The translations under genes were made by a program, and so were the position numbers. Below the pieces are notes generated by a model. That model had not been told where the DNA came from and did no database searches. It saw only the letters and a list, made by a program, of their open reading frames with translations. A stretch of 63,245 nucleotides of DNA, the filler included, from Reticulomyxa filosa (taxonomy: Eukaryota; Protista; Foraminifera): the NCBI GenBank assembly GCA_000512085.1. It is 16 parts of 16 records of this genome, joined end to end, with 100 filler letters (N's around TTAATTAATTAA, not from the genome) between each part and the next. Parts side by side here need not be neighbours in the genome. Positions count along the whole stretch, not along the records: positions 10,734 to 17,502 come from ASPP01038126.1; 15 more parts are not named here. One strand, written 5' to 3'. This document shows, piece after piece, positions 10,734-17,502 of the stretch (the first letter of the stretch is position 1; every line of letters begins with the position of its first letter).

Positions 10734-12057
10734 AACAAATGACTTAATTTTGGGTTCTCAATTTCTGTATATCCTTCTAATGTTGTAAACTTTTTTAATG
10801 TGGCTTGCATTTCTACATATACATCATGTTTTGGAACAAACAATTTAATATTGTGGAATCTGTGATGTGTCTTCGATTGTCGTTCAAAAAAGTCTTTATC
10901 TTCAGATACAATTAAATTAAATTTCTCTGCTTTCTTCATTACTGCCACTGCTGTTTGTAATTTGGTTGCATTATCACATAAAATAGTAAATCTTCCAACA
11001 TCAAATACTTGATTATAATCTCCACTATAATCATGTTGGATTTTTTCTAATAATCGTACCTTATCTTTAACTTTAGGTGGTTTTACTACTGTTATAAGAT
11101 ATTTTTGTAGTTCAGACACCAAATTGATTATCTCACCACTTATCATTGCATTTTCACTTCGGTTAATTAAATCTTCCAAACTCGTTGCATGTTGTCTTAT
11201 TTTTTTGGCCTTTATTTCATAAGATGATCCTAATTTGATTGTATAAAAGCATTGGTAATGATTATCTTTCACAGGAACTGGGTTATCATTTGAACTGATG
11301 GCATGCTCTGAATTAAAGATCATTGCCTTTATAATGGATGTAACAGTAAATTGTCCACAGTCTGGGCAACCATATGATGTCTTTTCTGAGTCGAATGAAA
11401 TATCACTAAATCCAATATTCACCCATACTGGTAACTTTGCTTTCGAAGCCAAGCAATCTATATTTGTGCAGTAACCTTGCAAATTAATTCCAGGTTTAGT
11501 TTCTCCAATTTCTACCTTTTCTTCTTCTTTCTTCAATTTATCTGGCTCTACTCCATCATTGTTATTTGTTACCTTTTTTATCCCACAGCCAACAAAAAAA
11601 AAAAATGTGCAAATGTCAAAAAAAAGAATGTAAGATAAGAAAAACAGAATACCAATAATCTTAACTTGTTCAGTTTTTTTCTCTTCAGTTGGACTTTGAA
11701 CAGCAGTCTATTATTATTTTGTTTTGCGATATATAAAAGTGATATTTGTATTGTTTTTTTTTTATTTTTTTTTTTTTTTTTTGCAAAAGTATAGATTACG
11801 TTCTGATCCAGCAATGAGACTGTGATCTGTTCAATCGCAGCTGACACGTTTCCATCGCTTTGTTCAAGCTTTTTCTGCAATGTCTCTTCTTTTACCACGT
11901 CACCGTACAATTTTATCAAGGTTTTTATTTCTGTTTCATTCTTTCCTGTCTTTGGTTCATCTTGCATGCCTCCTGCAAGTTTAACAGGTAATTCAGTAAC
12001 GAGGGATAGTGGATTTGCACCACTATGCGCGAGTACGCTTGTACCTTCATAAGTCAT
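10734..12057 (-). CDS. Multidomain protein (3' truncated): KLAGG leader, CUE-like domain, four-Cys domain, RelA/SpoT-like nucleotidyltransferase
   Basis: Two phase-0 GT-AG introns (~11799-11708 and ~11665-11573) join the ORFs in frame. Motifs include KVKDKVRLLEK..DY.GD, FDVGRFTI, HRFHNIKL and VEMQ, plus YCTNIDC...CPDC. The start may lie further upstream (12093 or 12207). Confidence 0.7.
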
Positions 12058-14343: not shown

Positions 14344-15577
14344 TTATTCCACAGGTTTGATGTTAACGTGTTCAGTGGTAATATGATCTTGTATTTTGTC
14401 AAGTTTTTGTTTTTTATCAAGAAACAGTGACGTCAACAACTCTATCAATTCTTCATCGCCTGGAGGATGTAATGGATCATAATGAGTATAAAGTTTTTCT
14501 TGATCTTCAGGTCCTAACTGATTGACCATTTCTTCCAGTTTGGGACGCAATAAAGTGTGTCTCCTTTCCATTTCTTCGATGCTTATAATATTGTCTGCTG
14601 TTTCCCGATTCCAACTTACATTTTCAAAGGGCAGAACCCCATTTAAATGATCGCACTCATGTTGGAACGCTTTATTTTAAAATACGTGCACATTTGTTTT
14701 TTTTTTTTTGTATACAAATTTGAGAAAATGAAGCGATGTAACTTCGAGAGTCATGACTTTTCAAATAGCAGATACGTTGTTGTCCATGTCGATCAAAAAA
14801 TGTTGCACGAATGCGATTGTATCGTGTTTTCTTAATAGCTATTCTATCATCGATCACACAAAAATTAAATATAGTGGAATTGTTTGTTTTTTTTTTTTTG
14901 TTTGAAGATAGATAAGATAAATAAGATAAATAGATATAGAGATATAAGGTATATAAAAGAAGACACATTGAAAAAAAAAATGCCCTGGATGGCTGGAACA
15001 CATTTCAAAATTCGTGGAGGTGCGTACCCCATTGCAACCGAATAATAACGTACTATGCAGATGCGATAGTGATCCCCATTTACCTTGACGATGTTCATGT
15101 TCGAAGAGATGCTGATCCAGTTCCAATGGCTCCCATTCGGGATTTACAATAAGCAATTGCGTTTTCTTTTTCACTTGCTGTGAATATTTCATTATGTCGG
15201 ATTCCGACACTGCTGCACTCTCACCTAATCTGTCCATTTCTTCTACCTCTTGTTGATATGGAATATGTGTACGTAGTTTTGTTTCTAATTGTTCCAAATA
15301 TATTTGCATTGCCTTTTTTTTTGTTTTGTTTTGTTTGTTTTTTTTTTTTTTTTTGTATATTATACAAAATATATATGTATATATGTATATAAATACTCAC
15401 TTCGAATTGCTCTTTTGAATCTTTGTCATCTTTTGGATCTCGTATAAATATGTCTTCGAACTCGTTTTTGTTTTCTTCGAAATCTTCATGGAATATTGTA
15501 TCCATGGCAAAAAAACGGTAGGGTAGACCTACTTGGGTTGCTGATAGACTTGTTGCTTGTGTTTCTTCCTGTTTCAT
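14344..15577 (-). CDS. Hypothetical intron-containing protein
   Basis: Coding-like exons (15577-15401, ~15312-14975, ~14840-14715, ~14670-14344) separated by microsatellite or poly-A introns. No family recognised and exon frames are uncertain. Confidence 0.45.
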
Positions 15578-16609
15578 TTTTTTTTTGACCAGAAATTTTT
15601 GGAAAATTCTGGCCCACAATCTTATTTTGATATTTTCTTTGCTCCTGCTTTTAATTGCTTCAAAAAACCAAAAAAAAAAGGATAGTTTGCTATTACCATG
15701 AATCGCAGAAAATCGTCAAACATCGCTTGCACTCTCGGGTTTCGCAACTGTGTGAGTTTCATGGGAGTAGCGGCTCTTTTCAAACCTGTTGTCAAAAAAT
15801 CCACAAATTTTAGAGCTTTGCCAAATACCACATATGCGATTCGTCTCACCAGGATGCCCAAGAAAACGCAATGAGAGCTTAGGAATATGAAATGACATTG
15901 GAATATATATTTATGGGATTTTCAAAATTTTTTAAAAAAGTTTTGACAAGCGGACTCCTTCTACTTAATTACATACTAAAAACTGATGTGTTATAATAAT
16001 TTATCATACGTTCAATTAGGTCAAGTGTAATCTACATTTAGAAGCTAAAAGATTAACTTCTTCAAAATGAAATGGGCTTTTAAAGATTTTTTGTGCAATA
16101 AGAAATTTAAAATGTAAGATCTTGGCATTGGCTACTGTAAGGAAGTGTAATACGAAAAGTTATCTTTCAGACACGTTTAAAAAAAATGGAAATCAATTAA
16201 ATAAAAAAGAAAGCAAATATAACAAACGAATGAAAGAAGCGTAATAAACAAAGCAAGGAAATAAATAAGTTGTATTTGCTTCGAGTGTTGTTCTCGTCTA
16301 TCCTTGACAATTTTGCAGTGAAAGAAAAGGGTGTGTAAATGTCTGTAATAAAGACTAAGATAGAGCTGTTGCGAAAAGATGTGTTGAACAAAGGAGAATT
16401 TTGGCTTAAAATAAAAAATTAATAAGAAGAAAAGGAAAAAAAAGACACGCACATACGCAAAAAAAAAAAAAAAAATTTTTTATTACTGTCATCACGATTC
16501 AACATATCAAGCCTTGGAACAATGACAAGAAAACGATGTAAACGAAAGTGAAAAGCCGAAGGACACGAAAGAAAAGAAGGGGGGGAAGAGCAAAAAAGTG
16601 ATGGCAAAA

Positions 16610-17465
16610 TCAGGTTTGAGTAGTAGAATTGGTATCTATTTGGGATTCGACGTGTTTGGTTTGAGATTGTGAAGGTTGTTGTTGTTGTTGTGTTTGCCTT
16701 GCTTTTTTAAAGAGTTGTTTTTGTCTTTGCCGCTGTTTATACCCAACAGATGTTTCGTAAAGTTCAGTCAAAGCGCGGGCATCGTGTATAAAGGCATTGA
16801 TATAAACACCTTGTGACTGTGCAGAGCGCACAAAGCCCCCATTGGCGGTGACGGTGACAACTTTGTAGAATTCGCCAGTGCCAAAGACGACCTTGTTCAA
16901 CGGGTTGACGCACTTGCCTTTCAATTGGGCAATGTAAGAAGGGACTTTGTCAGGCACGACGAGCAGCTTTTGCGTCAACGCGAAAATGCGCCGAGTTTCC
17001 AAAGGCCCGGCCATGAGAGTGGAGATTTTGATAAACTGGTTCCAAGAGGACTCACAGCACAGCCACTGTCTAGAGCCGATGTACGTTTGGATCATGGGCA
17101 GCACAGGCTGTTGTTGCTCTTGCACGCTCATTTGATGAAGCACGACGTCGTGTTCAAACGGACGGATATATCCATTGCACAAATTCGACACAATCGCTAT
17201 CATCGTGCGCACGCCCAAGTTCACCGCGTTGTCGCACGTGAACTGCACGCTAGCGTCTTTTCTTCGCTTTCGGTTAGTCTCCGTGGGCTGAGTTTGCTGA
17301 TGTCGCTATTGTTGACCTGCTGAGGAATATTCAAAAGAGGCAAGAGTACCGTATTGGTATTGACATTGGTTTTGGGAGTCTGTAATGTTTCACCCGTCGT
17401 CGTCGTCGTGGTTGTGATTGTGGTTGCTTTATTGTTATTGTTATTATTATTAGTATTATTATTAG

Positions 17466-17497
<32 letters not shown>

Positions 17498-17502
17498 TTA
17501 TT
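16610..17502 (-). CDS. UPF0415/DUF1308 (C7orf25-like, PIN-like) protein, 5' partial
   Basis: VNLGVRTMIAIVSNLCNG, PVLP, AGPLE, VVPD, VFGTGE, TVTANGGFVRSAQSQGV and HDARALTE match the DUF1308 consensus. Confidence 0.85.

Follow-up and report, generated by a model that had tools for sequence, protein, structure and literature searches.

A Tas1/Apk-like RelA/SpoT-type synthetase domain in a family of predicted NLR-like receptors of the foraminiferan Reticulomyxa filosa

A synthetase domain of the RelA/SpoT (RSH) type at the end of a contig of Reticulomyxa filosa, a giant, free-living amoeba of the Foraminifera, raises the question of what kind of eukaryotic protein it belongs to and what it may do there. 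The stretch of DNA analyzed (the window, 63,245 nucleotides with filler) consists of 16 joined parts of this genome, one of which is the 6,769-base contig considered here. The gene corresponds to the public model RFI_35940 and only its 5' portion is present, on the minus strand (Table 1). A preliminary description, made from the sequence alone, had placed here a spliced gene with RSH motifs in the order expected of a synthetase and a reading frame that runs off the contig. All of this was recovered: the four motifs share a single open minus-strand frame, which leaves the contig at position 10734, and two GT-AG introns could be inferred from the sequence and from models of paralogues. The contig end truncates the synthetase immediately ahead of its C-terminal helix. 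Exons were searched singly, without a joined gene model; the public model reads through intron 1.

Two other genes are found on this contig, a spliced peptide-deformylase-like gene and a DUF1308 gene, both of which are housekeeping genes. The former carries a Q-H-E-C-D-H-L-N-G motif and looks like an ordinary organellar enzyme. The N-terminal part of the latter is Asn/Thr-rich and of low complexity, and the gene extends off the contig. Bacterial contamination as the source of the synthetase was rejected on the basis of the GT-AG introns, the spliced eukaryotic neighbors and more than 100 matching proteins in the same assembly. A stretch of 466 bases of exon C (11572-11107) is 100% identical in DNA to another locus (L091:1715-2180) and the exon upstream of it is 83% alike between the two, which suggests recent gene conversion or a collapsed assembly. 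The 5' part of the gene model may be such a conversion product or an assembly mosaic; the result at the level of the family is unaffected. We also looked for a contig that continues RFI_35940 and found none, the best candidate (L090) being just 92% identical over the overlap.

Table 1. Features of the R. filosa contig, in positions of the window
Feature	Position	Strand	Basis or remark
Long coding exon C (linker, Cys4 domain, synthetase)	10734..11572	-	open to contig end
Synthetase domain, RelA/SpoT-type (Tas1/Apk-like)	10736..11173	-	sequence matches; paralogue model
Core synthetase motifs, whole span	11068-10805	-	
K36-x3-R40-x2-E43-K44-x3-D48-Y49-x-G51-D52	11068-11018	-	
D58-x2-R61-F-T-I	11002-10982	-	
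H104-R-F-H-N108-I-K-L	10864-10841	-	
E121-M-Q123	10813-10805	-	
Cys4 beta domain	11195..11505	-	G-x-N-L-x-G-x-C-x4-C ... C-x2-C
Intron 2, GT-AG, phase 0	11573..11665	-	inferred from sequence and paralogue models
Short exon B, acidic linker of 14 codons	11666..11707	-	like peptide in paralogue models P0024, P0030, P0152
Intron 1, GT-AG, phase 0, poly-A-rich	11708..11799	-	inferred from sequence and paralogue models
CUE/UBA-like three-helix unit	11800..11934	-	family-conserved; weak Pfam match only
GG-MQ motif, resembles ubiquitin C-terminal cleavage junction	11962..11973	-	recurs in paralogues
Peptide-deformylase-like gene, spliced	14347-15900	-	Pfam PF01327 weak on two exons
DUF1308 gene	16613-17502	-	Pfam E 1e-37

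The identity of the domain was approached through both sequence and structure. Pfam RelA_SpoT matched the copy in the window with an E-value of 6.9e-5 and 23.5 bits, below the curated gathering cut-off of 27. Among PDB sequences, the best match of this single copy was the type VI effector Tas1 (6ox6, E 0.023), and Tas1 was the sole match of a profile made from family members only (E 7.5e-4). The AlphaFold and Foldseek check proposed in the preliminary description was carried out on the N-terminal 461 residues of a paralogue, P0073, rather than on the window copy (pLDDT 88.6). Foldseek placed Tas1 first (E 2.8e-6), and every match at E < 0.001 was an RSH enzyme. In VIA structural alignments the P0073 model scored Z 13.2 with Tas1 (172 residues, rmsd 3.5, identity about 20%), 12.2 with RelQ, 12.1 with RelP and 11.1 with CapRel (196 residues, 9% identity). 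The predicted structure leaves us certain of a pol-beta-like RSH synthetase fold. Tas1 leads the housekeeping SAS enzymes by little in structure and more clearly in sequence; with a margin of only about 1 Z and 20% identity, the product is not readable from the fold. The domain had been introduced as a RelA/SpoT-like nucleotidyltransferase; by way of a small correction, RSH synthetases have the pol-beta nucleotidyltransferase fold, but their chemistry is that of a pyrophosphokinase and not of an NMP transferase.

HD, TGS and ACT domains, already said to be absent, were not detected by Pfam in or upstream of the window frame, nor were they present in the long paralogues, and a plastid-type or long RSH enzyme (Rel, RelA, SpoT, plant RSH) was therefore rejected. 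NCBIfam and PADLOC gave no match for the synthetase domain, and searches of GTDB genomes, viral contigs and phage records turned up no close relative. Beyond the family, the closest relatives are synthetase domains in fusions with eCIS-core, MuF, TPR or LRR domains. eCIS-core and MuF domains are the context of Apk1/Apk2, the MuF fusion being Apk2 (PMC10083569). Three distant matches (P0094, P0095 and P0100) were discarded as noise.

Residues of the active site are numbered here along the 146-residue translation of the synthetase interval. K36, R40, K44, D58, R61, N108, E121 and Q123 align with the motifs of Tas1. Tas1 active-site residues include R330, N370, E382 and the following Gln (PMC12691689), and these align with R61, N108, E121 and Q123 (PDB chain numbering +21); for Tas1 K353 the counterpart is not clear by alignment. 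The position of N108 (SYN3) is occupied by Asn in both Tas1 and the R. filosa family and by His in RelQ and RelP-type enzymes. The basic residues of SYN1 (K36, R40, K44), D58/R61 of SYN2 and E121/Q123 of SYN4 are kept in the window copy and in 89-97% of members, so that Asp58 and Glu121, whose conservation among paralogues had been named as a check, are indeed conserved. All ten motif residues occur in 57 of the 78 proteins that span the core (a set that includes 13 proteins with an unchecked source label), and seven more differ only by H104Y. Conservation extends over the entire domain (median column 0.89), so the catalytic columns rise only a little above background. The G-loop differs from that of bacterial relatives, G-Y-R-D in the latter versus H-H-R-F in the window copy. 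Its Tyr stacks on the acceptor base, and replacement of this Tyr by Ala abolishes toxSAS toxicity (PMC7229694; bioRxiv 2021.04.30.441581). The stacking position holds His in the window copy and in 82 of 102 copies (80%), and Tyr in 15 of 102; thus an aromatic ring is kept there, although a non-canonical one. Around the acceptor site, H103, H107 and K110 are family-specific and invariant or nearly so (each at least 94%).

The searches brought up 68 short relatives and 63 long ones, almost all from R. filosa. The synthetase was matched by 128 proteins, many of which are fragments or possible alleles, so this number is not a gene count. In at least 38 long paralogues the order is Cys4, synthetase, helical, NACHT, pentapeptide and WD40; the fuller order in the family is (GG-MQ), CUE-like, Cys4, synthetase, helical, NACHT, helical, pentapeptide and about 12 to 15 WD40 repeats. 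Pfam detects NACHT, then pentapeptide, then WD40 in the long paralogues. Walker A and Walker B were each present in 54 of the 78 core-spanning proteins, and at least five WD motifs in 39. In the tree, the window copy stands nearest to P0127 (synthetase identity 93%) and P0152, both of them full-length NACHT-pentapeptide-WD40 proteins, and the two closest loci in DNA, L006 (85%) and L007 (80%), reach NACHT, pentapeptide and WD40 across frameshifts. The idea of an NLR-like protein with a STAND/NACHT NTPase and a WD40 or HEAT sensor was thus borne out in its main part by the full-length paralogues, the nearest included, which have NACHT, intact Walker A and B motifs and WD40; a HEAT sensor was not seen in them. 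As judged from sequence, the locus is the 5' part of a gene for an NLR-like receptor from a large R. filosa family, with its own NACHT domain predicted from the paralogues, and it is very probable that RFI_35940 continues into NACHT beyond the contig end. In one further protein, P0043 (RFI_31460), the synthetase is joined straight to WD40 at a short shared peptide, without NACHT, an arrangement that reflects either a microhomology deletion or a gene-model error.

Three elements that had been overlooked lie upstream of the synthetase, the Cys4 domain, the CUE-like helical unit and the GG-MQ motif. The Cys4 domain is a 100-residue beta domain with four conserved cysteines (model pLDDT 91) and probably binds zinc. 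It had no convincing match among known structures (best Z 5.9), and its look-alikes in the Atlas belong to uncharacterized rotifer-type clusters, some of them fused to ubiquitin, which we regard as a lead only. Pfam CUE matched the helical unit with E-values of 0.08-0.17 in several copies. K-x-K-x-x-G-G-M-Q precedes this unit in 45 of 59 long N-termini, and the GG-MQ codons vary synonymously in three loci. Pfam detected no ubiquitin domain upstream of GG-MQ, and a role of this motif in cleavage is therefore speculation. The motif is preceded by sequence that looks unrelated.

Pairwise dN/dS between the window copy and three paralogues was 0.02-0.08 for the synthetase and 0.05-0.12 for the Cys4 domain; with synthetase dS of about 0.8 to 2.5 (dN 0.04 to 0.09) being near saturation, these ratios are rough. 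They show purifying selection on the synthetase, which is also the most conserved part of the long paralogues: across 38 long copies the synthetase averages 0.80 identity, compared with 0.65 for NACHT and 0.51 for WD40. In 387 WD40 repeats, entropy reaches 3 to 4 bits at positions 4, 5, 7, 8 and 23, while most positions are constrained. Fungal NWD receptors show this pattern, in which the effector stays constant and the sensor varies.

The same effector was also found on a protein of another type. P0076 of R. filosa (L093:4946-7999) is encoded by one unbroken frame that ends in the Cys4-synthetase-helical block and has no NACHT; its N-terminal parts are a signal peptide, a repeat-like ectodomain of 400 residues, a transmembrane helix and a coiled coil. 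The G+C content of this gene is 46%, versus 30% upstream. We predict P0076 to be a membrane receptor that reuses the effector of the NLR family. The occurrence of one block on both kinds of protein points to a portable output module.

Outside R. filosa, the family was found in a few metagenome contigs only, so that the scope "Rhizaria" in the preliminary description is wider than the evidence. Two low-G+C metagenome contigs group with the R. filosa copies, and two more came from ENA. One metagenome member (L003:786-2504; the same DNA is in L004) directly follows a divergent bacterial-type recA, whose best identity is 60-63%, to many phyla. This member begins with a signal-like N-terminus, extends past the helical domain as far as a Walker-A-like motif, and has two in-frame TAG codons without a frameshift; the adjoining recA also ends in TAG. 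It is either a pseudogene or a case of TAG recoding, and was compared in separate pieces only. In the tree it lies outside the R. filosa clade (95/95) and inside the family (100/97). This context would fit an exchange of the module with an intracellular bacterium, in either direction. In a soil metagenome, P0086 (L005:203-958) has lost the SYN1 and SYN2 motifs and has kept the Cys4 domain and E-M-Q, and is probably an inactive variant, to judge by these motifs. Tas1/Apk-like synthetases with TPR or LRR repeats (P0096 in L089, P0097 and P0099) came from metagenomes and a EukProt transcriptome, and Atlas look-alikes include clusters from diatoms and giant viruses. The Tas1/Apk-like lineage of synthetases may be widespread in eukaryotes. 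A search with the TPR-fused P0096 returned P0096 alone.

What would such a receptor do? Our preferred reading, to which we give a probability of roughly 0.47, is that the domain is a (p)ppApp-type synthetase effector of an NLR that would drain ATP and arrest part of the multinucleate network. By analogy with STAND proteins, the WD40 propellers would keep the protein closed as long as no non-self ligand is bound; once one binds, NACHT would swap its nucleotide and oligomerize, and the synthetase domains would be released or clustered. As suggested by the kinship with Tas1, the synthetase would then use ATP to pyrophosphorylate adenosine nucleotides at their 3'-OH, giving (p)ppApp-type products, and the loss of ATP would arrest or kill the affected part of the network. 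The purpose may be defense against infection or self/non-self rejection. A product of this type is favored because of the Tas1 kinship and the Asn at SYN3. Fusion of a Tas1-like toxin domain to NLRs in dozens of copies suggests that a free-living protist uses for its defense an alarmone chemistry that has to date been tested in bacteria alone.

Within the same receptor, the synthetase might instead slowly generate a nucleotide second messenger, such as (p)ppGpp or (p)ppApp, which is read by a separate protein, as with TIR in plant NLRs, or is aimed at ingested or endosymbiotic bacteria. The near tie of RelQ and RelP with Tas1 in structure agrees with this, the change from Tyr to His may cut the rate or alter the acceptor, and an effector shared with the transmembrane protein P0076 fits signaling. 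In addition, manipulation of bacteria was already proposed by Dyrka et al. for the fungal RelA_SpoT NLRs (PMC4986451). In sequence, however, the kinship is to domains of the toxin type, and we consider a slow signal unlikely.

The acceptor might also be the 3' end of an RNA, e.g. the CCA of tRNA, with a block of translation as in the case of CapRel, FaRel2 and PhRel. CapRel, an immune effector that is itself fused to a sensor, aligns with the model over the 196 residues given above, the family sits on a long stem branch in the tree, and the invariant H103, H107 and K110 surround the very site where an acceptor would bind. On the other hand, CapRel falls below Tas1 and the SAS enzymes in Z with only 9% identity, and neither the PDB sequence search nor PADLOC matched it. 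Pyrophosphorylation of RNA therefore appears quite improbable to us.

Loss of the G-loop Tyr in most copies, the unclear counterpart of K353 and the Pfam score below the cut-off could be taken as signs of a nucleotide-binding pseudo-enzyme, or of an integrated decoy for alarmones or pathogen effectors, with the signal leaving elsewhere, e.g. through the Cys4 or CUE-like unit. But the Asp and Glu that bind metal and the basic residues that bind ATP have been retained, dN/dS is below 0.1, and, with Tyr in 15 copies, the stacking position switches naturally between His and Tyr. Moreover, decoys usually diversify, yet the synthetase is the most conserved part of these proteins. This makes a pseudo-enzyme or decoy very unlikely. 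That this copy is decayed or misassembled, or that the family arose by neutral expansion of a gene acquired horizontally and has no immune role, seems the least probable of all, since the contig end that cuts the gene, the 466 bases shared with L091 next to an exon that is 83% alike, and the frameshifts that split close paralogues (at or near A-runs, as sequencing errors would give) are countered by an open frame with complete motifs, by a ratio of dS to dN that speaks of long selection and by at least 38 intact long models.

Returning to the (p)ppApp-type effector, its closest precedents in architecture are fungal. RelA_SpoT-NACHT-WD40 proteins have been described in fungi (Dyrka et al. 2014, PMC4986451; PMC12258605), no biochemical test being reported in these two papers, and share with R. 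filosa the order of RSH synthetase effector, NACHT and WD40 sensor. They are rare, 17 of about 4,600 Sordariales NLRs (PMC12258605), versus dozens in the single genome of R. filosa, whose proteins add the CUE-like, Cys4 and pentapeptide units. Among distant matches of the R. filosa synthetase no NACHT-bearing protein was found; thus its lineage, as judged from these matches, is probably distinct from the fungal one. Alarmone synthetases are also listed among N-terminal effectors of bacterial NACHT proteins (bioRxiv 2022.07.19.500537). The R. filosa genes differ from bacterial NACHT/Avs systems in being spliced and eukaryotic, in forming a large paralogue family and in having no PADLOC match.

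With Tas1/Apk1/Apk2 the R. filosa domain shares the fold, K-x3-R-x3-K-x3-D-Y-x-G-D, D-x2-R, Asn at SYN3 and E-x-Q, and it differs from them in overall sequence (about 20% identity) and in the G-loop, G-Y versus H-H or H-Y. Neither PAAR or MuF delivery nor an adjacent immunity gene, both typical of Tas1/Apk, is present at the R. filosa locus; here control would be exerted in cis by the STAND module. CapRel, FaRel2 and PhRel are toxSAS tRNA pyrophosphokinases of anti-phage defense. They have in common with our proposal the use of an RSH synthetase as a defense effector, gated in CapRel by a fused sensor; the R. filosa proteins differ in their lower structural score, the lack of a sequence match, a WD40 sensor acting through NACHT and a eukaryotic host. 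HET-D and HET-E of Podospora are NWD allorecognition receptors with NACHT and highly similar WD40 repeats that vary at few positions, in a fused multinucleate host, and their effector is HET/TIR. The R. filosa repeats likewise vary at few positions by entropy and the host is a multinucleate network, but the effector is an RSH synthetase.

The concept as such is therefore known, both from the fungal RelA_SpoT-NACHT-WD40 proteins and from the alarmone synthetases of bacterial NACHT proteins. Going by the literature that was searched, what is new is a synthetase of the Tas1/Apk-like lineage whose G-loop is altered, its occurrence in a foraminiferan, an expansion to this size and a second use of the effector on a predicted membrane receptor. 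We found no literature linking Reticulomyxa to NACHT proteins or RelA/SpoT enzymes, in a search that missed most subscription papers. On the boldest view, which we put forward only tentatively, a eukaryote has made a bacterial (p)ppApp-type toxin domain the common output of intracellular NLRs and of a transmembrane receptor, so that its immune or self/non-self system would work through 3'-pyrophosphorylated nucleotides; the module may have passed between this host and an intracellular bacterium, and cleavage of the ubiquitin type at GG-MQ may control it. The domain of this family is compact and well modeled, occurs naturally with either His or Tyr, and lends itself to assays in E. coli or yeast, so that the use of alarmones by a eukaryotic receptor, and the nature of the product, are directly testable. 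Our results also point to an NLR repertoire in Foraminifera.
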